DNA from: Paragordius varius
Taxonomy: Eukaryota > Animalia > Nematomorpha
Direction: 5' to 3'
NCBI GenBank assembly: GCA_964247055.1
Contig: OZ176054.1
Coordinates: forward strand, 3,286,001 to 3,350,000
DNA: 64,000 nucleotides
Shown: positions 9,177-60,781 of the stretch, in pieces
Numbering within the stretch: the first letter of the stretch is position 1
Layout: each line of letters opens with the position of its first letter
Made by a program: the position numbers and the translations under genes
The notes under the pieces: generated by a model
The model's input: the letters and a program-made list of their open reading frames with translations, nothing else
The model's database searches: none
Told to the model about the DNA's origin: nothing

Positions 9177-9183
9177 TGAAAGC

Positions 9184-32145: not shown

Positions 32146-34137
32146 TCAGTCCTTTTTTATCAATGCCAATATACTAAAACGATATTCATCCGTAGCATTA
32201 TTTGATTCTTCCAAATTTTTAGATTGCAGACTTTTGATTAATTTATTTAATGATTGAGCTCCAACCTAAAAATTAAAAAAATATTGAAATAAAATTTTTA
32301 AACGCATTTATATCCGAATACCGAATTAATATATATATATATATATATATATAATTTACTATGGGAAATCTGTCATCATGCTTTAATGTTGCAATCGATA
32401 TTGGTGTTTCATATCTTCCATCTATCGATTTATTCAAAATAATAATTCAAAAATAGCGATTATGAAATGAAAGACAGTATATACCTTTTTTTGTGCAGAC
32501 TATTTTTATGATTTTACCAATTTTTATCTTTTATTGCAGTTTTATGCGATCAAAACTAATTTAAATAATCCATTTATATATGTGTTTTTTTATTTATCTA
32601 TGACCAATGATATTTATTATTTTCGGAAAAAAATATACTTTTTTGTTAAGTTTTTTATATATGAAACCGTATGAAATTCGGATATATATATAATAACCGC
32701 TAAGAGCTTATAAATATTTTAAGATAATACCCAACAAATAAATGGAAGAATTAATGGGAACCAAGGCTACGAAATGCAAATCTATCGGTTCATTGGGTTC
32801 TGGAATCTAAAAAATAAACACAAATGAATTGAATACTCCTTTACTTGCAAAGGTAAACTATAATATAGACTCTAAAATGAGAAAATTTATATTTCTTTAT
32901 TATTACTCAAACTAACTAATATCAAATTTGTACAATCTGCCACACATTCTATATAATTAAAAAAGGGCAATGGGTAAAATTTAAGATATTAATATTTATA
33001 GTGTTTTAAAAATACAAAAATTAAAAGTCAAAATGATATGTTTTGGCCATAATTTAAGAAAATAAATTTATTAAATAATGTTATTAGCAACCTTGTAGAT
33101 TCCTCCATGTGTTTGGACAAAAAATATGCCTTTAAATTGATTTACTTTTTCATATATCACAAGGAGTTAATTGTTTTAATTTTTGTTTTTTAAAATATTA
33201 AACTAAAAATTTATTTGAAGGGCTATGATACGGATGGTCAGCCCAATATTATCTTGAGGTCCTTATAAAAAGTACAGGTAAGTGAATATAATTATATGAA
33301 AAAACGTACATTGGTTTCTCCATTTGCAGCATTTTGAGCATGTTGAGTTTTCAGTGCATCACATTTTTCGAGATAATTTGCTCGATCATCTGGGCTCATA
33401 TCTTTGGTATCTCGATATATTTGATCCAAAACACAACTATTTTCTGTTAGTAGAATGGTTTATATAGTTAAATTTTAATTAAATATGTCAAGCAAGGTAA
33501 AAAATTAAATGGATTCATAAAAAAATAGGCTGTTTTCATTTCTGCAAACACAATCACATATGGACTAAAATACGGGGTTAAGATAATCTTAAACCCAGCT
33601 TAAAAAGACAATTATGTAGATAAAAAGAGAATTATAAAAATAGTTATTTTAAACATGGAGTTCTTCATAGAATATACTTTGTTTACTTTAAACATCGCAT
33701 TATATCATTAAACTCTATTATAAAATATAACCTAATGTAATTTCCTTAACATTGAAAAGAGTATGTAATACAGCCATAGTTCCGCATGAATTTGGAATGG
33801 TTTGTTTTGAGAACCAAATCTCAGCGGAGTTTTTTAGAGATGAATTATTAGGAATATCAATACTCTAAAATAAGAACAACAACCGATACTTTATTAACTG
33901 GATATAAAAAAATGTAGGCGCCAATTTTATTGGCTAAAATATCTATGTAATCTTCGTCCAATGACCAAATATCGATGAATTCCCAATCATTTTTAACACC
34001 AAGTGAATATATATACTTGAATTAGAATAAGTAAAAACTTACTTGATTTAAAACCTAATAAATTTTATCAAAGAAAAAACTTCAGGATTGGACTCCAAAG
34101 GAATCCATGAGGTTTTGCCGTTTTCAGCTGAGAACAT
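32146..34137 (-). CDS. UCHL3: Ubiquitin C-terminal hydrolase, peptidase C12 (UCH-L3/L1-like)
   Basis: Exons 34137-34081 (WIPLESNPE), 34054-34043 (VLNQ), 34015-33890, 33864-33732 (KQTIPNSCGT, catalytic Cys), 33443-33310, 32806-32731 (LHFVAL, His), 32421-32360 (DGR, Asp) and 32265-32146 join into one open frame. Confidence 0.92.
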
Positions 34138-34180
34138 CGATAGATACCGCAAGGTTAAATGAATGCAAGTTTTAAAAAGT

Positions 34181-35306
34181 ATGAGTCACGGTGAATCTCA
34201 ATGGTAAAATATTGGTTTATGCTAAAAATTAGTTCGCCTTTTGCGTTTACAGGCCCAAGGCCCGATCCTAAATTTGGTCCTAAAGCATGCTTATATTGTA
34301 GGCGGTCTTCTCAACCAATTACGTTAGTTTTTTATATATATTTTACCCGATAGCGAAATCCCAGACGCCTCAACTCACATTCTTAAATGGGAATCTCCTC
34401 CTAAAAATGTTCTAGTCATTAAGAAAATTGGTGATCCGTCCCTTAATGAACAGTTTGTTCAAGTTGTTTCATATCTTATCAAGGTATTTTAGTTTATAAA
34501 CAAATTTGTTTTGTCTGGTTTAATATGTTCTTTGATTTTATGAGACTTTATAAAGATTTTTTAAAATGATGTAATTTTGTATAAAATGCCTACCTTAAAC
34601 AGCCTATAAACTAACATATTGATCACCAAGAACCTTTTTAAATTATACTCTGATATAAGTCCTATCGTTTAAAATTGGAATTTACTTCCAACAAACTTAG
34701 TAGTTTGGGATTATAGATCACAAAATCAATTATTTAATCACTTTTTTAAAAAATTGGGTCATAATTTATAAAATAAGCCACTTTTTTTTCAGAGAAGGTT
34801 CATATATATATAAAAAGCCAATTTGCAATAAGAAATATATTTTTTTGCAGAAATATGACATGGAAGTATTTGTAGAGCATACAGTGATGAACGATTTAAC
34901 CGTCCAAAAATTAATTGATGGTTGTCGATCTAAAATTCAAACTTATCATATGGGTAATTTAGATAAATTATTTTACCAATATAAAGTTTCTCAGTGGATC
35001 TTTATTATGAAATTATTTATATTGCATAGACAAATGTAATCTCAATAACCGGGTTGATTTTGTGATTTGCTTGGGAGGGGACGGTACACTTTTATATGCT
35101 TCATCCATATTTCAGGTATAGTTTTTCATATAAATACTTTATTATCCCAAATAATTTTATTTAATGGCGCAAAGGTTTCTAATTACTTAATAAATTGCTT
35201 ATATTTAATTATAAGCCAAATATTTAGCTAAACCAATTATAAATATACTAGGGAAAAAACATTTGATATTTTAAAAAAACTATGAATAATCTATTGTGAT
35301 ATATAC

Positions 35307-35341
<35 letters not shown>

Positions 35342-37032
35342 AAAGTATCCCACCTGTTATGGCCTTTCACTTGGGCAGTTTGGGATTTTTGGCTCCCTTC
35401 TGTTTTTCGGAATATCAAACACGGATTGATGATGTAATCAAAGGTAAGACTTTATTAGCATATAAATTTTAAGGTCAATGCAGTATGGTACTTAGAAGTC
35501 GACTTAAATCAGTTTTTGAATTCAACAAAAACAGCAAACCTACTGAAACTGTGCAAGTTTATTTTACTTTTGTTTTTTATAACTCTATAGTCATTTTATT
35601 ATGTTACCTATTTTTTATTATTGGTTGATTTTTAGGTTCTGAATGAAGTTGTGGTCGATCGTGGTATAAGTGCCTACCTTTCAGCCATTGAACTTTACAT
35701 TGAGAATGAGCTTATAACTATAGTACAAGGCGATGGTAATATATTTTGAATTCTACACATTTTAAAAGGGTCGAGATCTTAAAATTAAACCAAAAATTAT
35801 ATTCTTGAAACAATTCGTCAATCTTATATAATTTTACATGGAAATGTAAATTATGAAATATTTTGCTGCCACCGATTCTTGAATTGAAAACACGCCATTT
35901 GAATAATAATTTAATTGGAATTTCGAAATATCAATTATAATTATTTAGGAAAGCACTCTTGCTTATAAAGTTGATGGATGTTTACTTCATTAATTATTAA
36001 TGCAATTTAAGTCTTTAATTAGATAAAGTCAAAAAGATTCTATAATATTTATTTTTTTTGAAAATTTTTTTAGGTATAATTATTGCGACACCAACGGGTA
36101 GTACTGCATATGCCTGTGCAGCTGGCAGTTCAATGGTTCACCCCGGACTCCCCGCCATGATTATAACACCAATTTGTCCGCATTCTCTTAGTTTTAGACC
36201 CATAGTTATTCCGGCAGGGTGTGAAGTTATGGTATGGGATATATTTTATATTTGATGAGAGGGGGACCCTAATAATTTTCGCAAAATTTCCCATTTTTGC
36301 CATTTTGGCTAAATATAAAAAAGTGGATGTGATAGTTTTTAAAAATTAATAAATTTATACAAAACATTTTTTCCATGAGAATAAGAATTGTGGATACCAG
36401 ATCTAATCATATTAAGTTTTTTGTCGTAATTTTATACAATATACGTTTTTCTTGTAGATAAAATTGACGCCTGTTGCTAGAAGTTCCGCTTGGGTAGCTT
36501 TTGATGGACGAAATAAACATGAAATTAATGTGGGTGATGTGTAAGTTTCTCTTGCATATTTTACTAATTTTATAAATAATTTTTACACCCCGATATTGTG
36601 CGTTTTTGAAATATACATATAATAATTCTTTGTTTTTGTTGTTTTATATCGGTGTTTTTAACCATTTTTTATTATTAATTAAAAAAGACCATTTATATGA
36701 CTTTCTTTGATTGCTATTTAATATTTTAAACGTTATTTATTTTTAAATAAATTAATTTCAATTAATATCCTTCAATCCAATATCATTTGCCTCATATTTA
36801 TAATTTTTACACTTACTAAAAATTTGGTTATAGTTTGCGAATAACGACGTCAATATATCCTATGCCCTCGGTATGTTTTCACAATCAAATATCTGATTGG
36901 TTTATGGCTTTAAAGAAAAGTTTGCATTGGAATGAACGCGTCGTGCAGAAAGAATTAAAGCGCACCAACAGTTTGGATAAAAAGGAAAAAGAAATTGAAG
37001 ATTTAAAAGATGCCAGCATTAGCAAAAATTGA
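34181..37032 (+). CDS. NADK: NAD+ kinase (cytosolic type)
   Basis: Exons 34181-34203, 34233-34322 (FGPKAC), 34354-34483, 34851-34953, 35030-35115 (LGGDGT), 35341-35443 (FHLGSLGFL), 35474-35556, 35636-35735 (VLNEVV...QGDG), 36074-36231 (ATPTGSTAY), 36458-36540 and 36834-37032 join in frame. Confidence 0.95.
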
Positions 37033-37751
37033 TTGATTCTTATTTAAATTTTAGCAACTTCTTTTATTATAATGACGACAATACATAACTCAGGAAATAT
37101 AATTTTTAATTTTACAACTGTGATATATCTAGTTTTAAATTTCTTGTTATCATTGTTAATACCGTATATTGTCTAAAGTCTTGTAGCAATTACAACAAAA
37201 ATTATTTAAATTATATTTTTAATAAATATTGTAAATAAACTTAATAATTTATCAGATGTTTAATAAATATAAATATATTTTATTAAACATAATGATTAAA
37301 TTTTTGAAAAATTGGTCTATCTCTTTATTTTAGGCCGAAAATACAAAAATTTTTTAAAAAAACCCGCCTAGCAAAATATAGTTATTTATTTTTAAATCAG
37401 ATGTTTATTTTTAATCTTTGATGTTAAATATTCATTTTTCAATGATACCTTTTAGCACTTTATATTATTAAAAATTTTAGTTAGTAGAAGATAATTTAGT
37501 AACAATTGTAACTCACAAAATTATTTGCGGAATAAATATTATAAACATTTCGTTACTAGTGTATAGTGCTCAACTTTACCTAATTGTAGGCATACACCCA
37601 TTAGTTTACATCATTTTATAAAAATTAATTTAAAGTTTAAATGTATATTGGTAGTAAAATTAACTCAATATAATTCTAAATGGGTTGTATCTAAAACATA
37701 TACCGTTTCTAAAATAATTGCATATTTACTATACTTTTCAGTGTTAGTACA

Positions 37752-40700
37752 ATGCTTGAGGCGCATGATTTAATTAATGCATCGAAGTTTGTTAGATCCC
37801 ATGAATTATGCCGTAAAACGCCTTTGATCCATATCAAAAATATGTTGGATAATCAAGAACTATATTTAAAATTAGAAAATATGCAAACAACTGGTAAATA
37901 ATTAACTGCAATATCAAAGGTTCTTTTAAAATCAGAGGTGTTATTAATCAAATTTTCACGATGGATGACGATAAACGACAGAAACTAATTACAAGTTCCG
38001 CTGGTAATTATGGGAAAGCATTAGCCTATGTTTCAAATATTTTAAATCTAGATACGCTAATCATTATGCCAATTACGGCACCTCCTGATCGAGTAGATTA
38101 CATTAAGGTAATCACGGATTTTTTGCGCATTGAGTCAAACATAAATATAATTAAAAAAATATTTACAAAAAATGCATAATTATAGGAGTTTTATATTTTT
38201 AAAAAGTACTTAAAAGATGCACAATGTTAATCTATTAAAAAGATCAAACCACTAAATCTAGCCATGCTGCATATTTCATCTAAAGTACCTGTATATTGAT
38301 AAAAAGTTGGTTTTTGGCAATCATATAGTATAGACATAGCTCAATTCACAATCAAAAGTGTCTACTATACGTGCAAGCCGTTAGTAATTATTTTTTAAAA
38401 AATAGGAAGCCAATAAACATTTTTTTTCATTTATATATGCGACAATTTATTGATTACTTCTTGGAGGCCCATAGTTTCTGCCAAAAACTAGGTCACTATT
38501 AATATTTTTTGTAAACATAATTAAGATGGTATAATTTTAATGATAGTTTTGATTATTTTTCTTTTCAAGGCCTGGTAGATTAAAAATTATTTTACAGTTC
38601 CTTTATGGAGCCATCAATCATATTTTATTTGAAAAAAATTATATATTAACCCGTTCATTGATAAAAATACTTTTTCAGACAATTCAATTGTAGACAAAAA
38701 CTTCAAAAAATTTTAGTTATATATTATTATGTACAAAAACAGGGATTAAAACTCTATCGTACATCTTATGTTCGAATAAAAAACCCGATTCGATATAAGA
38801 TTTAAGATACCTAAAATTTCCGTTGATACTATTTTATATATTGAATTTTCCTAATGCGGTTTCACCAAATTTATATTAGTCCCTGGGTTCAAAAGTCATT
38901 AGTGTGCCAAACAATGAATTACAGCTCACTCTTGAACAATATGCCGAGAAAGAAAGGAGAACAATTGTACATCCATACGATGATCTAAATTTGATTGCTG
39001 GTCATTCCAGGTTTTAAAATTTAAGTTTTAAATTAACAGTATAGAAATTAGAAAAACGTAAAGACAGGTATTTTAAAAAAGATTACCATATTTTAAAACG
39101 TATATCAATATAATTAGGGAAATGAGATGTAAATTAATAACACACTATATTATATAATATCTCTTATAGTACACTTTTTTGTCTTTATAAACTTAATTTT
39201 TACCATATAAATTATAAAGTTGTGGGTTTGAAATTATGGAACAAAATCCGGACACCGACCACGTGATAGTTTGTTGCGGTGGTGGCGGATTATTAGCCGG
39301 TATCGCATCAGCTGTTAAACACATCAAACCGACTTGCAAAGTTTATGGAGTCGAACCTTTTGGAGGTCTAAAAATTAATACTTTTTTGGAAAAGGGTATT
39401 TTCATTTATATAACTAATATGCGAAACAAGAAATAAGGTCAAAGATTCTAAATATGTAATTGTGATATTTTAAAGTTTTTTATTTATTTTTTGGTTGGTC
39501 ATGTTTCATTCTCTAAATATGCGACTCTACTTTCCTAAAAAATTTCATATATAAAATAAATTTTAGTAATAATTTTTTTTGAAAAATTCCATATATATTA
39601 TATGTATATACCATTATATGGTATTTAATTCAAATAGCTCCGAAAATGTTTAAAAGTTTTCAACAAAATATGCCTGTTACTCTTCACAATATTGATACAA
39701 TAGCAAGTGGATTGGCTCCACCATATGCGGGTATATATATAAACAAAATTTAGTAAATAACCAAAATTATGAATACATGAAATGTGAAAGATAAATAATT
39801 TTTTATATCCGTTATGACATTTCTATAACCTATATGAATAGAATTTGATACAATTAAATTGGCAAAGGATGATAAGTTTTATTATCCAGTATGCGTTTTA
39901 ATAATTGCTTATTTCACACTATAGTTGGGCAATTTGCAACACAGTAGTGTATGGAAAAGAACAACAAAGTAAAGAATAAAATAAAGAGAGAATTTTTTTC
40001 AAATTTTTTACAATTATATTTTATTATTATAATTATCTTTTTTTTAGTTATTTTATTGAAAAAGATACTACCATGTATCAAAAATTTTGGATATAGTTCA
40101 ATTTCATAAATTTTACGAGAATTTAAAACATAATATATTCGTTCTCGTTGAGACAATATTAGTACGAAAGTAAAAATTGTTTATTTAACATTTTTTTTCT
40201 TTTTTCCAAACACTACTGCATTACAAATTGACCAACTATAGTCTAAAATAAACAACGATTAAAATGCATACTCTAAATTAAATGTTTTACCTTATATGTA
40301 TAATCTTTATAATGTTAATTTTTTACCACCGTCCTTTTATATTAGTTGTTGCAAAATTTCTAAAAAAATTTCGTTTTTTACACATACAGGTAAACTCACG
40401 TTTGAAATTTGCAAACAATTAGTTGAAGCCATTATACTCGTTTCTGATACAGAAATTAAAAGTGCCATCTCACTGCTTTATGGGATCGGTTTGGTTGTGG
40501 AACCTTCGGGGGCCGCAGCTTTTGCTGCCCTGATGCACAATAAAATTCCTGGAATTAACGTTAAGCGACCAAACGCTTCTGAAACGAATGTTGAAAGTGA
40601 ATTAAAAGGTTCTTTGGGAAACGGAGATATGGGTAATTTATAAATTTGAGGGGATTTTTTTTGTTAAGAAAGAAGGGTATTAAAATGGTTTTTTAGAGCA

Positions 40701-41073
40701 TGTCTTGTTAAAATAATAATATTTATTTCCTAGCCTAAACTCTTTTATTACAACACTTTATTAAAATTGTTTTAACTATTTCATTTATTTAAGTGTCTTG
40801 TGATAGTGTCATAACTAATATTATGAAGAAACTCAAACATATTTATGATAAATACTTGATTCAAACAAATATTTGTAATTGGTTCTATTATATATTTTAT
40901 TTATATTTTTTCAAGATTCATCTTATATCGCGTTTTCTCCGAGATTGGTGGCATCTTACAATGGTTCCTCTACAAAATTCACCGAAACGAATGGACATTC
41001 CTTAAGCAATATTGTCGTAGTTTTAACTGGTTCTAATGTAAAACCTCAACAACTTTCACAACTTATAAATTAA
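37752..41073 (+). CDS. PLP-dependent serine/threonine dehydratase / serine racemase-like enzyme (fold type II)
   Basis: Exons 37752-37893, 37920-38107, 38880-39010, 39220-39365, 39638-39730, 40390-40632 and 40916-41073. Motifs [15 protein letters not shown] (PLP lysine), [21 protein letters not shown] and LTGSN. Confidence 0.9.
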
Positions 41074-44000
41074 ATAAATAATCAATCAATTATTATTAAA
41101 TAAATACGAAATTATATAATTAGATTATTTGAAACCTGATGTCATTATGTCGGTTAAAAATTGGGTGATATAATTGTGTCAAAACACCTCAGATTTGAAT
41201 GTCGCGAAAATAGTCAAAAGATTTTTTTATTATAATATTCAATGATAATTACTTTTAATATATTTATAATAATTTATTTTTTATTTAATTAAAATAATTT
41301 TATTTTAAGCAACTATTATATATCAGTCATGGTAACTATACGGGTGTGATTAAGTTAGTATATAAACAATAGATTTCATAAAAAAATGTAATTTATAAAA
41401 CGAAAATCATACTGAAGCTAAATTTGCTAACTCCTGAAAGTTAAAAATATACTGATATATTAACTGAAATTACAAATACGTATGCGGACTAATAAATTAT
41501 TTCTCCTTATAAATTAACGTGAACTTTATGTTTATTATCAAACTACATTGTTACATACTATTCGGCAGTATTGTTTTATTTTTTACAATTAGCCTGCGGT
41601 CATTTTGTTCGTTAAATTCAATTAAAAGTTTCTGAAACCACGCTTAGAATATTAAAATTATAATATAAAAAGTCGGGACCTTTAAATCTTACAGATATTT
41701 TTTGAATAATCGATATTTTTAAATTTTAATTTTCAAAAATTTGGGTTAAGATTAGTTTAACATGGTATTAAAATGATTTTTTGATGAAAAAAAGCTGATG
41801 GATGTTATCGATAGATTAAGTAAAATGCGAAAATATATAGTTAACGGTAAACTTTATTTAACCAAAGTTCCATATCAGACTTTTCGCGCCACTTTTTATA
41901 TACTTTTAACTGTTTTTGAGTAAGGCAATTATTTTAATAATTTTTTTTAATGATTACGTTCTGAGGAAATAAAGGTTGAAATAATTTTGTATTTAGCCCA
42001 TGCATAAATTTGTCCTCCGGGTTAAACCATTAAGTATTAAAATTAAGTCATTGTTAAAAAATATTTTTCCATATTTGTTACATTAGGTAATATATTTCGT
42101 TCAACAAATGATATTTTAATGTTCACCTTTCGCCCGTATATTTGTATTTTTATACAGCTCCCTAGGTAAGGGTAAACACAGGAATTTATTAAAAAAAGTC
42201 AATCGCGAGTATCTTATAAGTCAAGATGAATAAATAACAATTCAATGTTGAATTAGAATGGACTTACATGAGCCGGGAACAGCGTACACCATTTTTGGGT
42301 AGCTGTTAAACCCCATTACATGGGGGGCTGGGAAACATAATTTAAAAGATTGGCCTAATTATCGTTAACGCATTTATAAATTATACTTAAAAAATATCAA
42401 TTTTTATGAATGAACCCACACCACCTCTTCCAGGAAATTGCTTCAAAGCCTACCTTATCATTATAAATATACAGTAAAAATTAAAAATATATAGACAAAA
42501 CGTAAAATAGAAAAACAAATGTTTTTTTCCAAAAGACAACCATACTTATTTAAATCAGACTTTTTCCAACATAAATAATTGAATTATGAATTATAAAATC
42601 ATTGTTAAAGAGAATTAGCCCATTTTAGAAGGATGAAAAAATTTGGATTCGAAGCCCAAAGATACTATTATACCCCTCTATTTTATAATTTGTAAAACAA
42701 TGAGTTATATTAGATATTCAATTTTAAAAAAAGTACAGCGGTCTTTTGAAAAAAAAATTTTGTCTTTATAATTTTACATTTTTCCGTATAATTTCAATTT
42801 TTCTGTAAATAGATTGGAAAAAAATTGGTTATGTCATATCAAGGAACATGCAATAGTATTCTGCAACTAGTTAATCATTAAAAAGAAAAATATAAGTTTA
42901 TTTTAAAAAATCTAAACGGCATGCGGTTTCCCCACGTACTTATTTTTTGCGAATCTTGATATATATTTTTATTTTACCATCAGTCAGTGTTAAAAGTAAG
43001 TATTTTTTTATAATAAGCTTAGAGCCTCATTAAATAGTTTTATATTTATAAATATATTTAAATAAATTTTACAATCACTGGCCAAGCATTTGTTTAACAA
43101 AATATATATATATGACACATATATTAGAGTAAAAATATAAAAAAATGACCACAATCAACCAGTTTAATTATTATACATTGTTAAAGCTATCGTAACACTA
43201 TACAGTCGCAGTCGTTTAATATATAACTTGTAACTTTTACATTTTTTGACAATGTATGTTAAAAATAAAATCCATAAATTTTTTTAAAAAAATAAATAAT
43301 TAATCTTGTGCCGGGGAATTTTCGACTATTGCATTTTTATGGTTTAATATATCCATAAGTTACACTAATTTCAAAAAATTGTCCAACATATAAATCAAAT
43401 TTTTTCTGTTAACTTCAAACTTAATATGACAAAAAGAATTTTTACCGTTTATTTTGTGGACTTTCAAAGATATCTCATATAATATAATAGTTTTAAGAGA
43501 TATAAAAATAGGTATTAACGCAAATTAATTAATATTGAGCAGGCAGTACTTCAAAATCAAATATTGTATATTATTATATAATTATCAGATTTTTTTGTAT
43601 AATATAACCTATCCTTGTCTTTCTTTGTGGTTGCTCTTTTTTGTGTATTTGATCTTGAAAAAAAAGTAAGTTTGCTTGACAAAAAAAATAGAAACATTGT
43701 ATAATATATTTGCTTATATACGTGAGAAACTATCATTAGGTATACATACATAATTTATTAATTAATCAAGTATCCGCAATTAATATTTTTCTTAAATGTT
43801 TTCATAAATAAGATTAGTCATTTCAAATGTATATATTTTTTTATATTATTACCTGATTCAATCTATTCTATTCTATTTCAACAGGTAAAATTTTGTATTA
43901 AATTAAAAACTTAAGGTATTGGTTTAATTGTGAAATATTTTGAAACTTCAAACTTTTAAACACGTCCTTGTCTTTTGAAATTCTAATTGAAAATTAAAAT

Positions 44001-44823
44001 TAACCTATGTTTAATACACCAAGAACACGCTAAAAAATTGTAGCTAAAAAATCTATTAAGTATTTTTTTTGCGTAGGAACCACCGAATATAATTTTGATT
44101 CTCTAATTGATGTTTTTTCGATTCAATAAAAAATTAAATATTATATCTATCTATCTAATAAATTATTTATATACTCTTTAGGTGTGTAAAATATTTTTTT
44201 GAAAAAATTTGTTTGTGCCCCATTAAAAACCTAAAAAAATATTTATTTTTTCGTTTTTTAAAAAGGTTTTAAATTTTTAATTTTTGACGTCATTCAGGCT
44301 TAATTTGGATGTTAATTTTGATAACTTTATCATTAATTGAAATATTAATTGTAAGCTTTTAAATCTATATATATATATATATATATTACTTAATAATGTT
44401 TCTAGATATAATATCAATATATATAATCCCTAATTAGATACTTTTTTGCATTTTCTATTCCTAAATCAATTATACTTAATATTAATCGGCTTAATTATAT
44501 ATATATATATATATATATATTTTAACAATTTTTTTCGCAATTTTAAAAGAAAAAATATTTTAAACCTTTAAACAGCTCCGATATTCGTAATATTTTGCAA
44601 AGGTATTATATTATATTTCAGATTATAATAAAGAAAATCATACCTAAAACTATTGGGTATTTATGAAAAAAATATATAAAAAATCATTTATACATTTTAG
44701 AAACAAGGTGTAATATTTTTACCATTTAAAACTATTCACGCTTAATATATTTAGGTATTTTGGCAATATCACCCATTTCTCTAGATTATACAATATCCTA
44801 AAACAATAATAATAATAAATATA

Positions 44824-47605: not shown

Positions 47606-48974
47606 AATTACGCTAAAAAATTGTCCGTCCCCTTTTAAAAATGATCATTTAAAAAATATCCGTTTACAAATATTTTCTTACAAAAAGGACGATCTCATAT
47701 TTTGAGAATTTATTATAATTCCCTATATGTATGTATGCGGTGATAATATTTTTCAAATCCTACACATAATTATTTTTTACATTCCAATATTTAAAAAACA
47801 AAGTATCGAATTTTCTAATATTTATTTATACCAACTTTAAAGCAAAATCAGAGTTTTTTATGGATTTCAGTTAATTTTTAATGTTAGTCATTAAACCATA
47901 CACTGTGTCTTATATATGCAAATATTTTACACTGATAAATATCTTGAATCAAGTTATTTAAGCATATTTCCCTTTTCCAATTATAAAATATTTTTATATA
48001 TTATTTAAAAATTATCTCACATGTTTGTAAATTTATTTATATGAAAATTAAAGGCTTTTGGTAAAAAATTGCCTTATAATTCTTATATCTAACCACACCA
48101 CATTTATTTATGTTTTTATATATATGTGTAAAATTAATAAATTTTGTCTTGTGATCAAATATGTTTTGGGTACATCCTAAAATATTATTGTATTAATAAG
48201 TGTACACTTTAAGCTCGAAAATCACATTTTTGATTAACTTTGGATTAGTGTCTACAAAGAACAATAATAAAAACATACATAGTTTGTTGCAAATCTCACC
48301 AATATCCTATTTTCTCAAAGCAAGTCGTCTCAGATACTAGAGCCATATGAAACGCTCAAATGGTTGTATCAACAAAATAGGATTCTTTCATCCCTATGGC
48401 AATTTAAGACCAGGTAGATCATATCATAATTGAGACAAAACCATCAGCCATGCCTAAACATAACTCTATTGACCAAAGACGACTGTCTCGATCGCAGGTT
48501 ATTTGCTCAAAAATATAAAGCAAGCGAGGAGAAACAACTAACTGATGATGATGATGGTGTCATATATGTATAATTATTTCCTTTCTAAAATTGGAGATGT
48601 GAATATTGTTTTTTTGCATAACATATTTGAAAGTGATATCAAATAGAATAAATTAGATAAGTTAGGAGAAAGTTAGTCACCATTTATTCGTGATAGAATG
48701 TTACAGTTGGATTTGAAAAAAAAAATCTTACAAGTTACTTAAAAAAAATTGAAAACTGAAATATGGAGGGTTTGGATTTTCCTGGATCCGAGGCAAAAAC
48801 GAAAAATAATTTTATAAAGTTTCATTTAAACAACCAAATTAAATAACGATTATATAATTTATTATTTAAGAATCTAATGTATATATTATTTGACTAATGA
48901 TATGTGTAAATATATGTGAAGATTGAAAACTCAAATATTTTTTCACAAGGTACATTTTAACCATATAAATACAA

Positions 48975-51900
48975 TCAATTGAAAACAGGTATTTTTTCCC
49001 ACTCCATATGATTGCGTCCACAATTATCCAAAATCACCGCGCCATCTTCCATGCGTGTGGATATGCAAAGTTGAGTGTTCCATTTGCTTTTAATTTTTCC
49101 CTGAAATAACAAATTATAACAAACTTATTTGTATAACTTTTAGGGTAGTTATCTGTCCCAAAGTTTCAAATTTTGCATGACTTAAGTCCATATGATATTG
49201 CGTTATATCTAAGATATGCATTCTATGGCCTGAATATATTGGAAATGAAAAATATCTCAAACTTGGAGCCGTAATTTTGGTTTTTAATTGAAACCAAAAA
49301 TGAAAAATTTGATTAACTAAGTAATTTTAGAATGCTTGAAAATAGTATTAAAATCAGCTGTTTGATCAGATTGGATTGAGCAATTTATTTTAACCTTCCT
49401 TACAAGTTACAAACTGTAAAATAACAATGACAATTATTTTTCGATAGTTTTTTTTTACAAATTTTACTGGGACTAAAAACACCTTAATATATATCCGTCC
49501 CTAAAAAGTAATAAAGTGTTTAATATCAAAATTTTGATATTTGCATACATTATCCCAAATCCATTGTTGAGTTAAAGTTTCAGAACAGCCTGACAAAATA
49601 ATATTCGGTGGGTCATTGCTTGTAACGGCTTGCAAACACACATCATCATGTTTAATTTGACCACTCATGGAATCCATAAAAAATATCTAAAATGTTGAAA
49701 TATATTTTTGAAATTCTAACAAGAGTGATTTAAATTTAAAATATTCACAATTATTTAAACTTGAATTGGGGTAAATATATTTCAATCATCAAACTATTTA
49801 ATTGTGATATAAAATTATAAATAAAATTATCAAATATTATATATAAATTTCAGGTCTTTTGCAAACTCTTTTCCAGACATCAATTACAACATTCCAGCAG
49901 AATATTAATTTATTATAAGCATTTAATATTGCATAATAAATAAAATAAAAACTATACTGATAAAACACGTAAATTATAACCTGAAAACGCCCTTCATTAC
50001 ACCCAAACATACCAATGTTACCGGCATGATTTTTCAATGTGTCTAAGCATTTGGATGTTTCTTTAGCACGAATCTATGGATAGAAAAAATTAAACCGGAA
50101 TCAAAAATAATGGTATACGGACAAAACGTAAATATATAAAGGCAATCATACTTTTTAAATTTTGAATATTTAATATATAAATCATTGTTTAAAATTGCAA
50201 ATTATGAAATAGAGGTGTATTTGGTAATACAATCATTAAATATTTTACATATGATTATATGGAAAAATTTAGGTATAAAAAGGTATGGTTGCCTTATGCA
50301 AATGTCTTTATATTGAAACGTTTTGTCCGTAAAAAAAATAATTTTCAGTGGATATGTTAAAACATATTATTTTGCAAGACATACATTAATGAATTCACTT
50401 ATGTTTGCCGGATAATGGAATGTTTTATAGACATTTTTTATGAACCAGTCAATGGAATGACAACCAAGTTGTTTTTTCATAGCTAATCGTTCTCCCACAT
50501 CTCCTGCATCAACTTCAAGTGCAACTGTTTAACAAAATATTTTGTGTAAAAAACACACCGGACACCACACAAAAAAAGTTTATTTAAAAAAAAGAAATAA
50601 TAGAAATTCACAATTGGTCGCCATAAAAATGCAAAAAAAATGTGTTTATCTTATAAGTGAAAAATGGCAAAATTTTTCTTTCAGTTATTATATTGCCAAG
50701 TCAAACTAAGGTATAAGTTCTTATTCGCGATAATGTCAAAAAAATAATTTTTTAAGCAAAGAGATAAAAATTGGACAACTCATAATATTTTGCAATATCG
50801 GTTGACGACTGTACAATTTTTTTTAGAGATTTCTAAGACCCAAATAAATATAACGGTATTTTTCGAAAAATATTTTAACATAAAATCGTATGCCAAAGTT
50901 TCTATCTATGTTTCTGAATCATCACAAAAACAATCAATGCATTTAAACTACAAAATACTTTATAATCTTGACTAATAAATAAATAGTTTACATTCATTAA
51001 CGCGGTAATAAAAACGTTTCCATTCCTCTCCAAACCAAACTTCAACGAGCCGTTTTTGGTTTTTATGGATGACATTCATGGCACCTCCTGGGAACTTGTA
51101 AGGCGAAGATTTTCTAAAAATGTGTCCAACTCTAGAACAAGGTATAATTTCTAGCGTACCCCCACACAACCATACCTGATAAAAAAAGATCAGTAAAAAT
51201 TGAACAGACAAAACGTGGGAATATTAAGACAAATTGAAAATCATACTTTTTTAAACTTTATTTTTTTCCTATATAATTCGATTACAATTACAAAATATAT
51301 AATTGATTGTGTTACCAAAATACACAAATTTATTTCTACATTGAATTTAAATACAAAGAGTAGAAATTAAAAAAATTACAGCGGTCTTTTGAAAGTAGTA
51401 ATTCTTTGTTTATTTACCTTCCGCAGGATTTTAATTTTTACTGTAGAATACATCTTCCTTTTTTAAAATTTTTTTATGATTTTCCTTATATTTAAATTTA
51501 TGACACAATCATAAATATTTATTTACCCGCAATGATAGTTCAATATTTTCTGCGCCCCAAACATCCATCTTTGTATCGTAAGCGCCCAAATTCTCGAAAA
51601 ATTCGCGATCAATGCTAAATAATCCCCCGGCATGAGCTGGACTCCTAGAAGCGATAAAAATCATTTTTACATATAATTCTTATCATAGTTATTAATAAAA
51701 TTTTGTAAATATTTATATCCCATAAAGAAATAATTATCTGTTAATTCCGCTAATTAAAATTTTTAAATAAATAAGTTTTACACATATTTACCGGTTTGTA
51801 AAAAAAAGAAAGACATAAGAAACCGGCTCTTTAAAAATTATCAAGCTTATAAAATAAAGACCATAAAGGAGATGTCCTGTCATTATTTCGTCGAAGCATT

Positions 51901-54900
51901 TCATGTTTGGGTACATTATACCATCTGAAATTGAGACTCCAATCAAATCCACCCAAGCTTAAATCACTGCCCCCAATGTATTGGAATGTTGTTGCGTGTA
52001 TCACATCAATTATAGGGGCTACAACTTTTTTTCTGTTCTTCAAACAGACAAGACAAAAGCAAAAGAATTTGGATTTAGAACAGTTGCAGAGCAAATAAAA
52101 ATTGCCAAAATTTTGGGGTTATTTTTATATATATGACAGCGCTCAAACTTAGGTCCGTAGCTTAAATCCGTAATAATTTTAAAAACCTATAGGAATATTT
52201 TGATAATTAAATAAACCTTACGTAGGCACAATATTTTAGTTAATTTTGTTTGTAGTAGTTTAAAAACAGAATTTATTATCGAAAAGCGCTCTTTTCATAT
52301 GAGCTTAGTTTAAATTACAGTAAAAACTGAAATTATACGGACAAAAAATAAAAATATAGAGGCAAATATTTCTTAAAGACAACCATACAATTTAAATCTT
52401 TATTTTTTTAAATATAACTCGTTGTTTTAAACTGCAAAGTATAAAGATATGACTAATGGTAAGGCAAACAATTATATATTTTACAATTGTAATTATATAG
52501 TTTATATAAAAAAAAATAAGGTTTAAAAAAGGATGGTTTTCTTTTGAAGAAAAATATTTGTCTTTATATTTTTACATTTTGTCCGTATAATTTCAATTTT
52601 TACTGTAATATTTGGCCATATTAGTACATTATATTTAAGCGATATATCTTACTTTTCACCATTATTTGCAAACAATTATTTTGAATCATTAAAATCAGGG
52701 GTGTTCAACACAAATGGGTTCTACCGGGCAGCATTTTAGATTCAAAAAACCGGCAGGCCGCATTTGAAATTCATATTGGTATTCATAAATAATTTATAGA
52801 TTGTAACCATAAGATTGTATAATGTAAGCACAATATGACAATTTTTTTTCCGTCTTACCAATTGGAAAAACTTGTTTATCAATTTTTTTTAAGAAATATC
52901 AATTTCACCAAAACTTTTTGATCATATTTTGCAAATTTTGGATTCCCGAATTCTCGGGCCGAATATAAAGTCTCGCGGAGGGCCGCATATTAGACACCCT
53001 TGATTGAAATTTCCGAAAACGGAAACGCCAATTATTATTATTATTATTATGGTAGTTTTCGTATAATATATAAAAATAGGTTAATTAACTTGTTTTCATA
53101 TATTTCAGCTAACAAAGGCTCTAACCAACCGACATTCACTTCACAATGTGCATCTAAGAAAGTTAGGGTTTGTCCTTTTGCTTTTTCAGCGCCTACAAGT
53201 CTTGCCCTTATAAGCCCAGATCTTTCTTCTAATCGTATTAGGGTTATTTTCCCCTCATGTTCCGAATTAAGAATCTTCAAATAATCATCTAGCGGTCGAC
53301 CAAGATGTGCTAAAGGCAAAAACAGTATTTCTATGTACTGGGTAAACAGGAAATTCCGTAAAATGATCTAATTTAAAAAAAATTATCCACATCAAAACAA
53401 TCAATTTTTTAATTAGTTATATTAAATCATCTAAATTTCCAAAAAACGAATCAAATATGATTTTTTGTGGTTTATTTTAATAGCTCATACCATGCCTATT
53501 TTGTTAAAGGGTTGCAATTTCCGAACCCGGATACAGTTATAAATTAATGCTGTGCAATCAGCATAAGCTAATATAAGTGTTGTTTATTTAAAAACCTTAT
53601 TTATGAGTTTAAACCCTTAAGCTTTAAATTTTAGAATTAATTAAGAAAAAAATTTCTGCAAATTTTGGCTTATTACGTCTATCACTGCAATCATCAACAA
53701 GTATGATTTCAACCAACAGTTCAGGCGGTGTTCTATTCAGTATACTATGGATATTCCGTAACAGTGTTGACCAAGCTTCATTGTGATATATGATAATGAT
53801 CGAGGTATTGGGCAGGTTCCAGGGGTATCTTTTATCAGCACATCTTGATTATGTGTAACAAGGTTTTAAGTTATAATATTAAAAATCCCGTTAAAAAGAA
53901 TTAAATATATAAAATAAGAACAAGACTAGACTGCCATGTCATCTATTTTTTCACTGAGGTTTTACTTAGTTTTATCCTTTTAATTTAAAACTCATTAATA
54001 TAAATTGACCAATCCTGATTGTCTGAGATAAAAAAAATGTAGGGATGAAAAAAATACCCAGGTAATCGAGTATCCGGAAGCGTTCTATCTAACGCAATTA
54101 AATCACTAACATAGACATCAAATTGATTTTCGTTAAACCGTTCTTTGCGTATGGCATCAGCTTCAGCAGAAATAGAAATGCGAGATCCCTTCTCCCCAGG
54201 TCCCAATCTAACTAAATTTTGGGCTACATGAAGAATATTACATTTTACCGATTTATAACTTGAATGTACTTAAAAAATTATTTAAACATGAGAAATACCC
54301 GATTTTCAATCAGTTTTTAAATTTTATCAAAAGTTTATATTAAAAAAAATTGTTGGTTAAATTTAAAATTGATACAATTATTGTATACGTTTTGGTATTA
54401 TGCGATATTTTGGTGGGCGTCTGGTTTGTGAATCCCAGCTATTGTTCAATGGGTCATTTTCTAGTATATACATATGTGGGCATCAGTTAATTTTAATTAC
54501 ACATAAACAAGATAAAATATATAGTTGAACATTGATATATTACAAAGGCTTCATGGAAAAATGGCAAAAACCTCAATATTAAATATGTTTTTGGAAAAAA
54601 ATAATTTTAGTATGATGGTTTATAAATATATAACATTTACAGTTCAAATTCACCTTAAAAATATATTATGTGTTTTCGAACTAAATAACTCATTATTAAT
54701 ATGAAATATATCTTATTTATGGCACAGTTTATTATTTTTTCAGTATTTTTTTGATCTAAGTCAAAATTTTTATTATTTAAAAATATATAAAAATATAGAT
54801 AATTTTTAATCTTAAAAAACACATAATTTGAGGGTGAATTTGAATTGTTCAAGGGTGAATCTGAATTGTTTAATGGTGAATTGGAATTGTAAATGGTATA

Positions 54901-55519
54901 TTATCACCACTGTAACCGTTTTTAATTAATGAAAATTTTAACTACAAGGAATAACGGTGCCTCATAGCCAATTATAGAAACAGGTATATCAAGCCTTATC
55001 ATACTTAAAACTTCCGAACCGCATCGAAAAAAAAATTCCCTGTCGCAATCTACAGGCGACAAATGCAACAATAAAAATTATTTCAAAAATCTTACCCTTC
55101 AATGATGCCAACAATTCAATATGTTCTGCTTTAAATACGGAATGATCATTTTCATACTCATTGGGATAATTTTTGGAATGCCCATTAGGAGGGAAACGTT
55201 GAACAAATTTATTTCGACTTTTACTTTGGTTTCGGTAAAATGCCGAAGGATCTGATGGATAGTTTGAGGCATATTCATTTGATGATTTACATTGTAGAGC
55301 TCCTTCCATATTTTTCATGAAAGTTAAGTAAACTAATTGTCTTTCAATCACAAACATTGACGCCAATATGTCTAGGAATATCCAAGCTAGGGATGTTATA
55401 ATAATAATGTATATGGTATGTTTCCGATACGAACTATAATTATACACCCTTTGCACGGAAGGCGAACCCAAGGGACTGTTTAATCCATCGCCCCGATACG
55501 ATTGTTTGGAAAAATTCAT
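48975..55519 (-). CDS. Polypeptide N-acetylgalactosaminyltransferase (GT27, with ricin-type lectin domain)
   Basis: About 11 exons. TM segment [40 protein letters not shown] metal motif, [30 protein letters not shown] and C-terminal CLD/QQW lectin repeats. Stop at 48977-48975. The paralog cannot be assigned by eye. Confidence 0.95.
52316..52608. mobile_element. ~300-bp palindromic MITE family (intronic in GALNT)
   Basis: ttacagtaaaaactgaaattatacggacaaaa is mirrored by ttttgtccgtataatttcaatttttactgtaa. Related copies near 30100-30400, 42470-42810, 50090-50330 and 51200-51450. Confidence 0.6.
52696..53002. mobile_element. hAT-type MITE
   Basis: Termini CAGGGGTGTTCAA / TTAGACACCCTTG. Flanks ATTAAAAT / ATTGAAAT (7/8 match of an 8-bp TSD). 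Confidence 0.7.
54631..54898. mobile_element. TA-flanked MITE, same family as 63187-63409
   Basis: catttacagttcaaattcacc at the left end; gggtgaatttgaattg repeats and tgtaaatggtata at the right end. Confidence 0.55.
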
Positions 55520-56729
55520 ATAGAAAATCAAAATGTGAAAAATTTTCAATCAGAAGAAAAAATTGCAAATTTTATCTATATATATTTACACACAAACACA
55601 CAATAGATATAAGTATGTGGGGAAACTATCTTTGTTAGTTTATAATATGTATGTATATGTTGTATAAAATAAAACAAATAATAAGGTCACTTAAGCTAAA
55701 TGGATTGCGAAAAAACCGGTCGGCGCGCGTATATATATAGAGATAGACCTCCACACTAATGTTTATAGATAAACAAATAAACACACATTTTTTTGTAGAT
55801 AAATAGTTAGATAGATACCAAGTAAATTGGTATTTTATTGTACACATATAGAACACAACCGTATTAGCTGGGAAATTATATGATTTTTTTCTTAATATAT
55901 CATTTATTGGTGTAATAAAGTTTATTTTGATTTTATTGACTAAATTCGCAATTAGTATCTAGTTTAGGAATTTTCCATTTTTTTATTTCGTTGATATGCT
56001 GCCATATGCAGCCAAAGATTAGATTAATGGTATGATATCTTAATTTGGCAATTACAGACTAATAATGACATATTTTTGAAAAAAACATGATTATTGATAA
56101 TATCACTCTGACCGACCGTCGTAACTTATGCAAACAACAAAAAGATTTTTTTGAAAATGAAAGAACTACAAAAGTTGTTTGGGAATAATTCCCTAATACA
56201 GATTATAAATGTGTGTATATTTGAAAAATTCCTCATTTTATAATAAATTTCAAACAAGCATATGTTAAAATTCATGATAACCATGCCCTCCAATAGTTTT
56301 TGTCATCTTTAATTTAGACAAGTTTTTGCTTTAAAGGGAATACAAAATTACATTTCATTACAAAATAGGAAATCTTTAACCATTGTAAAATGTTACAAGG
56401 GTCGGATCAAAAATATCAGCCCCCATTAGAAACGTGTAAGTTTGATCGCCTATGAATGCAGTCATTTTTGATTATATAAATGTTATAAATAACATAAATT
56501 AAATGCTTTATCTTAATCGCTAAAACTTCCTTATAGCAGAATAGCATAAATAATTAATTTTTATATAATAACCTATTGCACTAAACCTGATTCATATGTC
56601 TATTATTGGCTAAAAAATGCGTAATTCTGAAAGGAGATCAATTATTTATTTAATCAAAAATTTAACTATTACACATTTACCCCATCTCTCAAGTAATATA
56701 TGAATACAATGCCAGAAAAACTGTTTCTC

Positions 56730-57900
56730 TTTTGTAGAAAACCATTTGTCAAGCTATTTTCCAAAGTCTGCTAAATTATTGAAGTGCTGCTCCACGAGCA
56801 TGTCCTCCATTGATCTCAAAAAGAGGTAATGGATAGATGGCGGTAGGTCAGAAGAATATGGGGTAGCGGAAGAATATCCCATCAAAGCGATTTTAAGCTT
56901 TTCATTGGTTTTGCCATGTGAGACGGAGAATTTTTATCTATCAAATTCATTTTTCCATGTCATATGCCCTATTTCGCACATTTGATAAATGCATGGTTTA
57001 AGTCAGGGCTGGCCAACATGCGGCCATCTTAGACATTAAAAAATTTGGAAATTTATTATTTGCAAAGATATGTTCATAAAATCTAGGGATAGTTATTAAT
57101 TATTATACATATTTTGTGAATAGGTATACCCAATTGGCAAGGAACTACAAAAGATGTTATATTGTGTATGTATTTTTCAGTTTAAGTCTAAAATCCAATA
57201 AAATATTCTCTGAATGTTTTGAATAAAAAATGCGGCCCACGAAGCAATTTGTTTTGAACATCCCTGGTTTCAAATCATTTGGTAGCGCGTGTGCATTAAT
57301 GATTTATTGGCCTTCAAAGTTCAGAATATGCAATACCGCTCTGGTATACATTGAGCATGGTGATCTTGCCGAAGCCATTTAGCCTTTGGTGTTGATGGAC
57401 CGGCTTAATGTGAATACGATTTTTTTCTGTTTGGATTTACAGAATAAAGCCATTTCTCATTACACGTCAGTTCGATGTAAAAAATATTACTTTTCCTGAC
57501 GCTGATCACGATTTCACAAGTTCTTTGATATATTTCATTTGACGTTTTCAAATTGTGTGCAATCCACTTGCCAATTTTGTAATGCTTGAATTAGACATAT
57601 ACTGATTATTTTTTATCCATATAATGATGTTAAAGGCCATTGAATTTGGGTAAGATCATCATTCAGTAACCTTAAAGTTGACTGTAACAAGCAGTATAGT
57701 ACTCTAACCAAGCGCCAAATGCCTTTCAATATCCTATTTTAACTCTAAATAGAGTATGACCATATGCTTATCTCAGCAAAGATAACTTTCAACAGTACTG
57801 TTTTATATTATAAAAAGCAATGCGAACCGCAATTCCTTACATACAATTCGACATGATTACTGAATGATAAAATAAAATGCTAGTTTTTGGTCGACTGTCG
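56730..57900 (-). mobile_element. Highly decayed hAT-like remnant related to 13230-14100, interrupted by a MITE
   Basis: Blocks of nucleotide similarity to 13230-14100 in the same order; no intact ORF. Confidence 0.45.
57004..57266. mobile_element. hAT-type MITE
   Basis: Termini CAGGGCTGGCCAAC / GAACATCCCTG with subterminal tgcggcc motifs; TSD only partly matching. Confidence 0.55.
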
Positions 57901-58807
57901 TTTAAATCAGATGTACCAATAGCGCCTGAGTCAATCTTAATATTTTAAATATTATTCGCTGATGTTTTATTTACAACGGTAACCATGCTTCTATTACCAT
58001 AAAATTTGTTTTCACAAAATTCTGTGAACATTAAATATATGATCTCAAAATTCTGAGATATTTAATTTTTATCCCCATATCTAGGCATTTTAGCCGTTAT
58101 TTCATTTTAAAATTTGAGATGTCACATCAAAAAAATAGGCCTTTCAAATACAGTATTAACATATATATTGACATTTTTTAAAATAAAGCATTTAGCTATT
58201 ACCAAAGCGTATGCGTAAATCTTTAAGCTCTTGATATAAAACAAGTATCACAAAACAGGTAAAACCTTTCTAAATATACTCGGACCACAAACCAATACCA
58301 AAATGCCTAATTTACTATTCATTATTTTTTATTTCCTCCGATTTTGCACACTGTGTGACGTTACTTTATTTTTTTATATTTAGGCCGAATACTTTTATGA
58401 TTTTTGTAAACTTTTGCAACATAAAATCAAATTATAATGGTAATTTATGATAAAATAACCACCACCAAACCAAACCTGTAAGTTAGAATGTAAGTTAATA
58501 CGCAAGTTTTTTATTGGAATTTTTTTTAAAAAAATAATGCTTGGCACTATGTAAATTTTGGTATCAGTTTTATTTTACTTAAGTAAAATATATATTATAT
58601 TTTAATATATCCCATTTATATATATCCGTTCATTCAATTATTATATATTTTTATGGTGTAAAATAATGAAAAACACCCCATATTCATAGGTTGACAATAT
58701 ATAAAGCTTTTAAATCTACCAATGCTAAATTAATTGAACCGTCAGAAATGATAAAAGAAGTTTATTTATAAAAATTTATCGGGAAATTATTTTATGTTAG
58801 CCATTAA

Positions 58808-60781
58808 ATGGCGCTCACCTGGAAAGATGCTTCAAATGAAGTTATTGTAGACGCCCTTCCCTACATCGATCATGGTTATGATGATCCACGAATTCGCGAA
58901 ATAGTAATTATTTTATCTAATTTTTAAGACTTTGGCTTTAGTTGATGAAGAAACTAAACGATATAAATCTACAAAAAATTATTTGGAACATTTACCACCT
59001 TTGAAGTTGACCGATTTCGAAACACCTATTATGAAACATGAATTTCAGCGCATAGCCAATCATACACCTCTAGAAATGATGAATATGCGACGGTATATAT
59101 TTAATCGCATTTATGTTATTATATATATTAATTAATATATTACTAACTTTAGGTTCAGTTATATGAGCTTATTTTATATCTACAATCAACCATACTAATT
59201 TTGAAACAGCATAAAGATTATTTTTTTAGATATGAGTTACCACAACCTCCTTCCACAAAAATGAATGATCTGACAGCCTGGACGGAAGCGGTCGAAAATT
59301 CGATGGCACAATTGGAACATCAAGCCACAAGGTAGAATAATTCTTAATTTTAATTCATTTTTTTGTCGGTATTTTTTATCATTGAGGTTTTTGAAATCTA
59401 TGTAATACCAGACAAAATTGGTTAACAATATATATTTGTTTTTAACTCATAATAAATTATTTTATTTTGATAGACTATTGGACGCGCATATTGATTAATT
59501 TACATTATTTTAATTTTTTTCCCCAAATTATATACTTGTCGCCTTATATGATTTTTCATTAATATTATCAAATTTTTTATTTAATCATATAGAATATCTA
59601 ACCTAGAACTAATGTCAGAATATGGGACCATAACATGGAAAAATTATATTGAAGTTTTGAATGGGATGGTGGATCAATTGCGTAAAGAAGTTTTAGCAAT
59701 AAAGTAACTATTTTTATAAAAATAAAAATAATTTTTATGGACTAAATAGGACTGTTTTAAATTTTAGGAGGCTTACTAAATTTCTCATGAAAAGAGCAGT
59801 TTTTTAATTGGAACCTTAAAATAAACTGTGTACAGGCAAGCTATAATATATGCAATATTCAAAGTTGATTAAATAGTTTTACAGCATTGTCTTGGATCAA
59901 TTATTCATATTGTATTGCCTATTTCCCAAAATTAAATTGTTATAATTTGCTCATTCTCTTTATAAAAATGTATTTTTTTAAAATGGTGGTTGGGTAAAAA
60001 TGAAGCTTTTGAATTATTGAAATATAGTTTTAATGTTTGAAAAACCGATTAACATTCTTATTTAAAATGTAATATACAGTTTTGTAAATTGTTAATTTTT
60101 TTACTAATAATTTTTTGTGCAGAAAAAAGACACAAGAAGTAAACTGGCAACGGAAAAATCAACAAACTCAAATGGGCAAAGAGTTGGAAGATTTAGAATC
60201 AAAGTATTAATATCGATTATTTAATGTTTATTATTTTGGTAGGATTTATATTTGAAAAGTTTTTTTTTAAACAGTATGTAACCGTGTTAGATTTATAAAT
60301 AATAATTTATTAGATAGTGTTAATTTATTCTCATTTTCGCTATTTTATATTAAATAATAAATTATACCCTGTAAAAAATTTTAGTATTTTTTTAAATGTC
60401 GTCATATGTTTTTACCTGAGTTATACAAATATAATAAAAAACGTTTTCATTTTACGACTATTTTAGTGTTATTTCAAAAGTTTTAATTTTTTTGAAAAAA
60501 AAAATAAGAAAGAAATTAAAATATAGTATTCAAAGGGTAAGTTTGGTTTATAATAAAATTAAGAATTCACATCGATTTTTAATTTTATTTTTTTTGATGA
60601 ATTCTATAGCGTAATTTTATTAAAGTAATAAATTAGCTCGGTTTTTTCAATTAATCTTTTATGTCATAGTTGGGTTGGTTTAGTCAGCAAAAACTATGAA
60701 ATCGAAAGAGCCATCGTTGAATTGGACAAAGAAATACAAAGGATACGATCGCACAAAGAAAAGCTTATTGCCTCTTCCTAA
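58808..60781 (+). CDS. BCAS2: Pre-mRNA splicing factor SPF27 / BCAS2 (Prp19 complex)
   Basis: Exons 58808-58903 ([10 protein letters not shown]), 58929-59092, 59230-59331 (RYELPQP), 59593-59703, 60123-60203 (VNWQRKNQQ) and 60670-60781 ([14 protein letters not shown]) join in frame. Confidence 0.95.

Follow-up and report, generated by a model that had tools for sequence, protein, structure and literature searches.

How short can an intron become in an animal whose other introns run to several kilobases? The question is raised by a 64,000-nucleotide (nt) stretch of DNA, G000:C5:3286001-3350000 (hereafter the window), which belongs to a 110.6-Mb assembly of 44 contigs from an animal that is apparently a hairworm, and which is very AT-rich (24-42% GC per 2-kb step). 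Four genes in the window, encoding a ubiquitin C-terminal hydrolase (UCH) homologue, NAD kinase (NADK), a pyridoxal phosphate (PLP)-dehydratase and BCAS2, had been proposed in an earlier note to contain eight GT-AG introns of 25-31 nt, all needed to restore conserved proteins. All eight segments were found on the DNA at the coordinates and with the lengths that had been given for them, and each begins with GT and ends with AG (Table 1). Seven of the eight are almost certainly real introns and members of a genome-wide class, and we infer from the sequence that they are excised from RNA. They are very probably genuine U2-type GT-AG introns whose length has come down almost to the physical minimum, forming a discrete class beside ordinary introns, which measure 76-772 nt in the same four genes.

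The evidence that carries this reading comes from the conserved proteins. Searches were made exon by exon, joined spliced models not being used as queries, and it was found that seven junctions are gapless in Pfam/PDB coordinates once the short segments are removed. The need for their removal was borne out for seven of the eight segments, in all four genes; it did not hold for the first NADK segment (NADK_a), which is taken up below. Six of the eight lengths are not a multiple of 3, and the remaining two segments (27 and 30 nt) hold an in-frame stop, so that a transcript keeping any one of them would be broken by a frameshift or a stop, which is the presumed fate of the unspliced RNA. GT and AG together have a frequency of ~0.0025 per protein-fixed junction at the local base composition; the pattern was found at protein-fixed boundaries at seven junctions in the window and at five elsewhere in the genome. 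A chance origin of GT..AG ends at alignment-fixed boundaries is excluded.

In the UCH homologue (minus strand), the frame that contains exon 1 matches positions 1-13 of the Peptidase_C12 profile, its W..E stretch being positions 1-9. Residues 2-41 of exon 3 match positions 15-55, in agreement with an alignment of the same residues to 20-59 of human UCH-L3 (PDB chain 1uch_A), and the start of the exon corresponds to profile position 14 and to residue 19 of 1uch_A; exons 4 and 5 match positions 73-104 and 109-153. Because exon 1 accounts for positions 1-9 and exon 3 begins at 14, exactly four profile positions remain, which the 12-nt microexon fills; it lies between the first two tiny introns. 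At the third (UCH_c) the two flanking frames close at 33860 and 33864, and therefore only a tiny intron can join exons 3 and 4. The first and last residues of exon 3 are identical in exon-sized open reading frame fragments of other animals (P0003, P0004); its boundaries are thus common to other animals and both flanking introns are therefore old. Within intron 2, one base (34033) is missing in three DNA runs, which argues for an intron, since coding sequence would not tolerate such a loss.

The NADK gene (plus strand), the exons of which match PF01513 and PF20143, mixes both classes, with successive introns of 31, 367, 76, 225, 30, 79, 338, 226 and 293 nt. Retention of the 31-nt intron (NADK_b) shifts the frame and then leads to a stop. 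The exon before the 30-nt intron (NADK_c) aligns to residues 131-162 of PDB 3pfn, and in another animal (L034) a donor occupies the same codon in the same phase. The short exon after NADK_c gave no profile or structure match when searched alone; from the frames and the human sequence, we take it to belong to NADK. In the dehydratase (plus strand), the PALP profile is matched at 5-34 up to the end of exon 1, the Gly split by the tiny intron is position 35, and exon 2, which starts with the PLP-lysine motif, covers 36-96. Matches to the BCAS2 profile at 2-20 and 24-76 flank the 25-nt segment of that gene (plus strand), and the residues between them account for positions 21-23 with no gap.

The Gly codon of the dehydratase holds introns in the same phase in two other animals (L031, L032), where they measure 312 and 235 nt; in all, three tiny-intron sites coincide with introns of other animals (the UCH exon-3 borders, NADK_c and the dehydratase). 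The comparison loci (L031-L036) are from animals other than hairworms, with a GC content of 32-61%, and were used for intron positions only. At such old positions, where other animals have hundreds of bases, the introns would have shrunk to 21-31 nt. The shared positions also bear on the idea that the segments are cut from somatic DNA, like the internal eliminated sequences of ciliates, and not from RNA. A length of 21-31 nt resembles that of the shortest eliminated sequences of Paramecium, and the DNA runs could derive from germline-rich tissue; however, the segments end in GT..AG and not TA..TA, their positions are those of spliceosomal introns elsewhere, and the joint is present at none of the sites in any DNA contig, all of which makes DNA elimination extremely improbable.

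Table 1. Introns of the four genes in the window and the UCH microexon (positions in the window)
Feature	Position	Strand	Length (nt)	Remarks
UCH intron 1	34055-34080	-	26	GT..AG, phase 0; exon 1 ends at Peptidase_C12 position 9; retention gives a frameshift
UCH microexon	34043-34054	-	12	Four codons, V-L-N-Q; fills profile positions 10-13
UCH intron 2	34016-34042	-	27	Phase 0; in-frame stop
UCH intron 3 (UCH_c)	33865-33889	-	25	Phase 0; flanking frames close nearby
UCH intron 4	33444-33731	-	288	Ordinary; CTAACAG at end; lies between profile positions 73-104 and 109-153
NADK_a, candidate intron 1	34204-34232	+	29	GT..AG; unproven
NADK intron 2 (NADK_b)	34323-34353	+	31	Phase 2; joins two open frames with conserved N-terminal stretches
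NADK ordinary intron	34484-34850	+	367	
NADK ordinary intron	34954-35029	+	76	
NADK ordinary intron	35116-35340	+	225	
NADK intron 6 (NADK_c)	35444-35473	+	30	Phase 1, in Gly codon; in-frame stop
NADK ordinary intron	35557-35635	+	79	Boundaries corrected by reading
NADK ordinary intron	35736-36073	+	338	
NADK ordinary intron	36232-36457	+	226	
NADK ordinary intron	36541-36833	+	293	Boundaries corrected by reading
Dehydratase (PALP) intron 1	37894-37919	+	26	Phase 1, in Gly before S-F-K-I-R-G
Dehydratase intron 2	38108-38879	+	772	Ordinary
BCAS2 intron 1	58904-58928	+	25	Phase 0; retention leads to a stop
BCAS2 ordinary intron	59093-59229	+	137	
BCAS2 ordinary intron	59332-59592	+	261	

The same length class was recovered across the genome. 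Six-frame Pfam searches were made of the whole assembly, and intron length was estimated by subtracting three times the gap in the profile from the genomic gap between neighbouring matches, which gave 88 estimates from protein kinases, Ras-type GTPases, CCT chaperonins, proteasome subunits and E2 enzymes. Thirteen of these (~15%) lie at 19-31 nt, a single one at 32-45 nt (43 nt), 13 at 46-99 nt and 61 at 100 nt or above. The distribution therefore has two modes, a sharp peak at 19-31 nt with its centre at 22-29 nt and a broad class that extends from 46 nt to several kb, separated by a near-empty interval at 32-45 nt. When five estimates were checked on fetched DNA, all proved exact and bounded by GT-AG (23, 26, 25, 58 and 80 nt); these introns lie within GTPase motifs that are invariant. 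Outside the window, the tiny introns at L022, L025, L027 and L028 have GT..AG ends in five cases out of five. Introns of 21 and 24 nt could be read directly in a Ral-type gene in which the profile search had read through in frame; at least four other introns that the search tables show to be read through are not included in the 88. The proposal of the earlier note that one spliceosome serves a bimodal system of tiny and long introns is supported by this distribution, by the genes that mix both classes, and by the presence of U2 and SF1 (see below). De novo detection of tiny introns was tried on 264 kb, where the bridging of open frames performed no better than on reversed sequence, and a codon-usage score, for which 971 codons had served as the training set, failed to tell exons from background.

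Tiny introns are not distributed evenly among the gene families. Eleven of them are in GTPase genes and two were counted in E2 genes (about six in all), with none among ~33 CCT introns, early positions included, nor among ~20 kinase introns. Within the window seven of the eight tiny introns are introns 1-3 of their genes, the exception being NADK_c at intron 6, and the small GTPase and E2 genes carry them throughout, not only early; a 5' bias may exist, but not as a strict rule. In the arrangement proposed here, the tiny class would coexist with introns of ~46 nt to several kb, frequently within one gene and in many cases clustered towards its 5' end. At L022 (G000:C2:9616675-9617196), which is a Ral-type GTPase locus, a 24-nt intron has no in-frame stop; its retention would add eight residues to a conserved motif after the DTAGQE switch region and would not truncate the protein.

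The splice signals of 13 tiny introns were compared with those of shuffled introns. At position +3, A is found in 10 and T in three; G stands at +5 in only five; and -3 is occupied by T in eight, by A in five and by C in none. Pyrimidines make up a share of 0.4-0.9 at -12 to -3, in a run that is broken by A, in keeping with the near absence of a pyrimidine tract that had been remarked upon before, and four of the 13 lengths are divisible by 3, with no visible depletion. Recognition would probably depend on a GT(A) start, a (T/A)AG end and, at 11-23 nt from the 5' end, a stretch rich in A that may serve as the branch site, with no real pyrimidine tract. As for the machinery, U2 small nuclear RNA (snRNA) is canonical and is represented by >30 full-length matches above the Rfam gathering score (best 177.7 bits), and an SF1 helix-hairpin domain (SF1-HH) is encoded at C5:3070526. 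U12 snRNA gave no match anywhere in the assembly, which does not prove its absence; the donors read GTA or GTT followed by variable bases, unlike the extended, conserved donor of U12-type introns. Since both classes mix within genes, and since U2 and SF1 but no U12 were detected, a single major spliceosome for both classes is the economical reading. The U2 snRNA genes form arrays at C3:250-530 kb, C2:11.95-11.99 Mb and C5:12.73-12.79 Mb, with many weaker copies besides.

Minimal signals of this kind are also what might be seen if the segments were real introns that are spliced inefficiently or conditionally, the retained RNA being degraded or giving truncated products, and hence acting as a brake on expression. 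Microsporidian ultra-short introns offer a parallel, with a median splicing of ~25% according to a figure quoted in PMC13644364, and every retained form of the window introns meets a stop or a frameshift. This explanation is nevertheless unlikely, as the host genes are housekeeping genes and tiny introns are frequent in the genes for GTPases and E2 enzymes.

Several observations weigh against the segments being genuine U2-type introns of a tiny class. NADK_a is dispensable, because two ATGs, at 34201 and 34219, share the frame of NADK exon 2 and no conserved residue lies upstream; it is plausible, from its sequence, that it is nevertheless a real intron. The branch-like motifs of CTAAT type, which the earlier note had seen close to the AG of several of the segments, are present, but not beyond what shuffled introns contain: yTnAy occurs in 11 of the 13 tiny introns against 8.0 expected from shuffles (P 0.058), and TAA likewise in 11 (P 0.13). 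A branch-site motif was rejected as an unproven defining signal of the class, since with n=13 its frequency is no evidence of a signal. In the UCH homologue, which covers positions 1-153 of the 211 of the profile, no match to positions 154-211, which carry the catalytic His, was found within 9 kb downstream, and 8 of 12 variants are non-synonymous, so the copy may be diverging, decaying or a pseudo-enzyme. Finally, the tiny segments are retained in all four genomic DNA runs and skipped in none, and from the runs that were guessed to be RNA the locus is absent.

The possible incompleteness of the UCH homologue, together with the fact that no RNA was seen and that the matching runs are genomic, gives some room to the view that the segments are not introns at all, but indel debris of pseudogenes, assembly errors or translated insertions, or that the true splice sites lie further off. 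A decaying UCH copy, however, would still carry the intron layout inherited from the working gene. The four runs that cover 33200-39000 (X1, X3, X4 and X5) are all genomic DNA, with contigs that span introns and spacers; X4 and X5 represent a lineage that is 1-5% diverged from the window. The same segments are present in these independent DNA runs, those of the diverged lineage included. GT and AG are found at every profile-fixed boundary, and the same pattern recurs at other loci of the genome, within GTPase motifs that are intact and invariant. More distant splice sites are opposed by the closing frames, which leave no room for them at UCH_c, NADK_c, the dehydratase and BCAS2. The view that these are not introns is thus close to refuted, and very improbable.

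Natural variation was read from the same runs. The sole indel seen in an exon is a 3-base insertion at 37858, and 10 of 19 exon single-nucleotide polymorphisms are synonymous in the predicted frames (5/6 in NADK and 1/1 in the dehydratase). Exons used as queries against protein collections for transcripts of the same species returned distant exon fragments only (own-genome records were possibly excluded there), word searches with the exons gave distant matches or none, and a search of the genome found no retrocopies of the three genes lacking the introns. X4 and X5 bear the same species label as the best-matching runs, with only 95-99% identity to the window, and one run under another species label shares 37% of words with it; this pattern, seen in X3, X4 and X5, suggests cryptic lineages or mislabelled samples.

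Introns shorter than ~30 nt had been considered absent from animals until a survey of 51 genomes found them only in myxobolid myxozoans (medians of 22-27 nt) and in Dicyema, with signals reduced to GTa...AG, and predicted further lineages (PMC13644364, 2026). The median intron is 27 nt in Dicyema and 57 nt in the orthonectid Intoshia linei (PMC6543705). Of the precedents that the earlier note had named among animals, the dicyemids therefore stand and the orthonectids, with their median of 57 nt (PMC6543705), do not; the second group is instead the myxobolids (PMC13644364). Intoshia linei is alike in being a reduced parasitic animal with short introns, but most of its introns are >30 nt and it is not a true precedent (PMC6543705).

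The myxobolids (Henneguya, Thelohanellus and Myxobolus) and Dicyema share with the present case GT-AG introns, 20-30 nt long, at positions that are conserved among animals, signals of approximately GTa...AG, a weakly conserved A upstream of the AG, the lack of a pyrimidine tract, a canonical U2 and a tendency of short introns to adjoin short introns. They differ in that their medians are 22-27 nt and their genomes compact, both groups being very small, strongly reduced parasites, whereas here only 13 of 88 introns are tiny, most are 100 nt to several kb long, the genome is repeat-rich and the animal apparently belongs to another phylum, that of the hairworms. Ciliates (Paramecium, ~25 nt; Stentor, 15-16 nt) resemble it in intron length, AT-richness and minimal signals, and have a conventional spliceosome (PMC5014332; quoted in PMC13644364); nearly all of their introns are tiny, whereas here a tiny class stands beside kb-sized introns in an animal.

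The closest architectural parallel is found in Gyrodactylus; among parasitic flatworms, this genus and the tapeworms have a two-mode distribution in which a discrete micro-intron mode lies beside a long majority (PMC4040987). In Gyrodactylus salaris the modes are at ~32 and 58 nt, the short one at intron positions 1-2, 69% of introns are >100 bp and reach up to 20 kb, and an adapted splicing or export machinery has been speculated upon (PMC4040987). The present class differs in its peak of 22-29 nt, which is below the 30-nt limit, where Gyrodactylus has modes at ~32 and 58 nt, and in that tiny introns are found deeper in genes as well, at NADK intron 6 and all along the small GTPase genes. The two-mode principle itself is thus not new, having a flatworm precedent in Gyrodactylus (PMC4040987); here the tiny class stands in an apparently new lineage and in a non-compact genome.

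A tiny minority of introns beside kb-sized, transposon-filled ones separates the miniaturisation of introns from the compaction of genomes, and makes it possible to compare one spliceosome on tiny and long substrates within a single gene. The class also matters in practice. The default minimum intron of gene finders and RNA aligners is ~20-40 nt. Such settings would be expected to break these genes, which would affect the number of genes counted, BUSCO scores and any claim that genes have been lost in the phylum. The genome paper on Gordionus gives 26.9% GC, with which the GC content here agrees, 64% repeats and a BUSCO score of 71.6%; the assembly, at 110.6 Mb, is smaller than the 200-300 Mb reported for hairworms. 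A search with the nematode cuticle-collagen domain gave no hit, which is uninformative as to the taxon. Among the papers searched, none of those naming a hairworm genus gives an intron length. A wider proposal can be put forward tentatively, and is rather doubtful: that hairworms, which are large, tissue-bearing and repeat-rich animals with a free-living stage, are a third animal lineage with introns of <30 nt, that a class measured by length is recognised differently by the spliceosome, that shrinkage proceeded stepwise within the phylum, and that part of the reported universal-gene loss and low BUSCO is an annotation artefact. The last of these would follow from the fact that introns of this size are passed over by the usual gene finders and aligners.

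Some further features of the window were recorded. A (TA)n microsatellite at 35295-35348 reaches the 3' splice site of the 225-nt NADK intron, and the contigs of all runs break there. The best candidate exon for the missing C-terminal part of the UCH homologue, at 32780-33310 on the minus strand, has F-K-G where the His motif is expected. A 79-nt stretch at 34102-34180, made up of the first 12 UCH codons and the spacer between UCH and NADK, has four further occurrences, 79-89% identical to it, on contig C3 (253-510 kb), in a region that also houses a large cluster of U2 snRNA genes; it gave no tRNA match and no Rfam match, and could represent either a repeat or a promoter element in shared use. 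Away from the four genes, a GC-richer block (42% GC) at 5507-9182 on the minus strand contains two open frames of considerable length (861 and 379 codons), which are probably the pol region of a retrotransposon.

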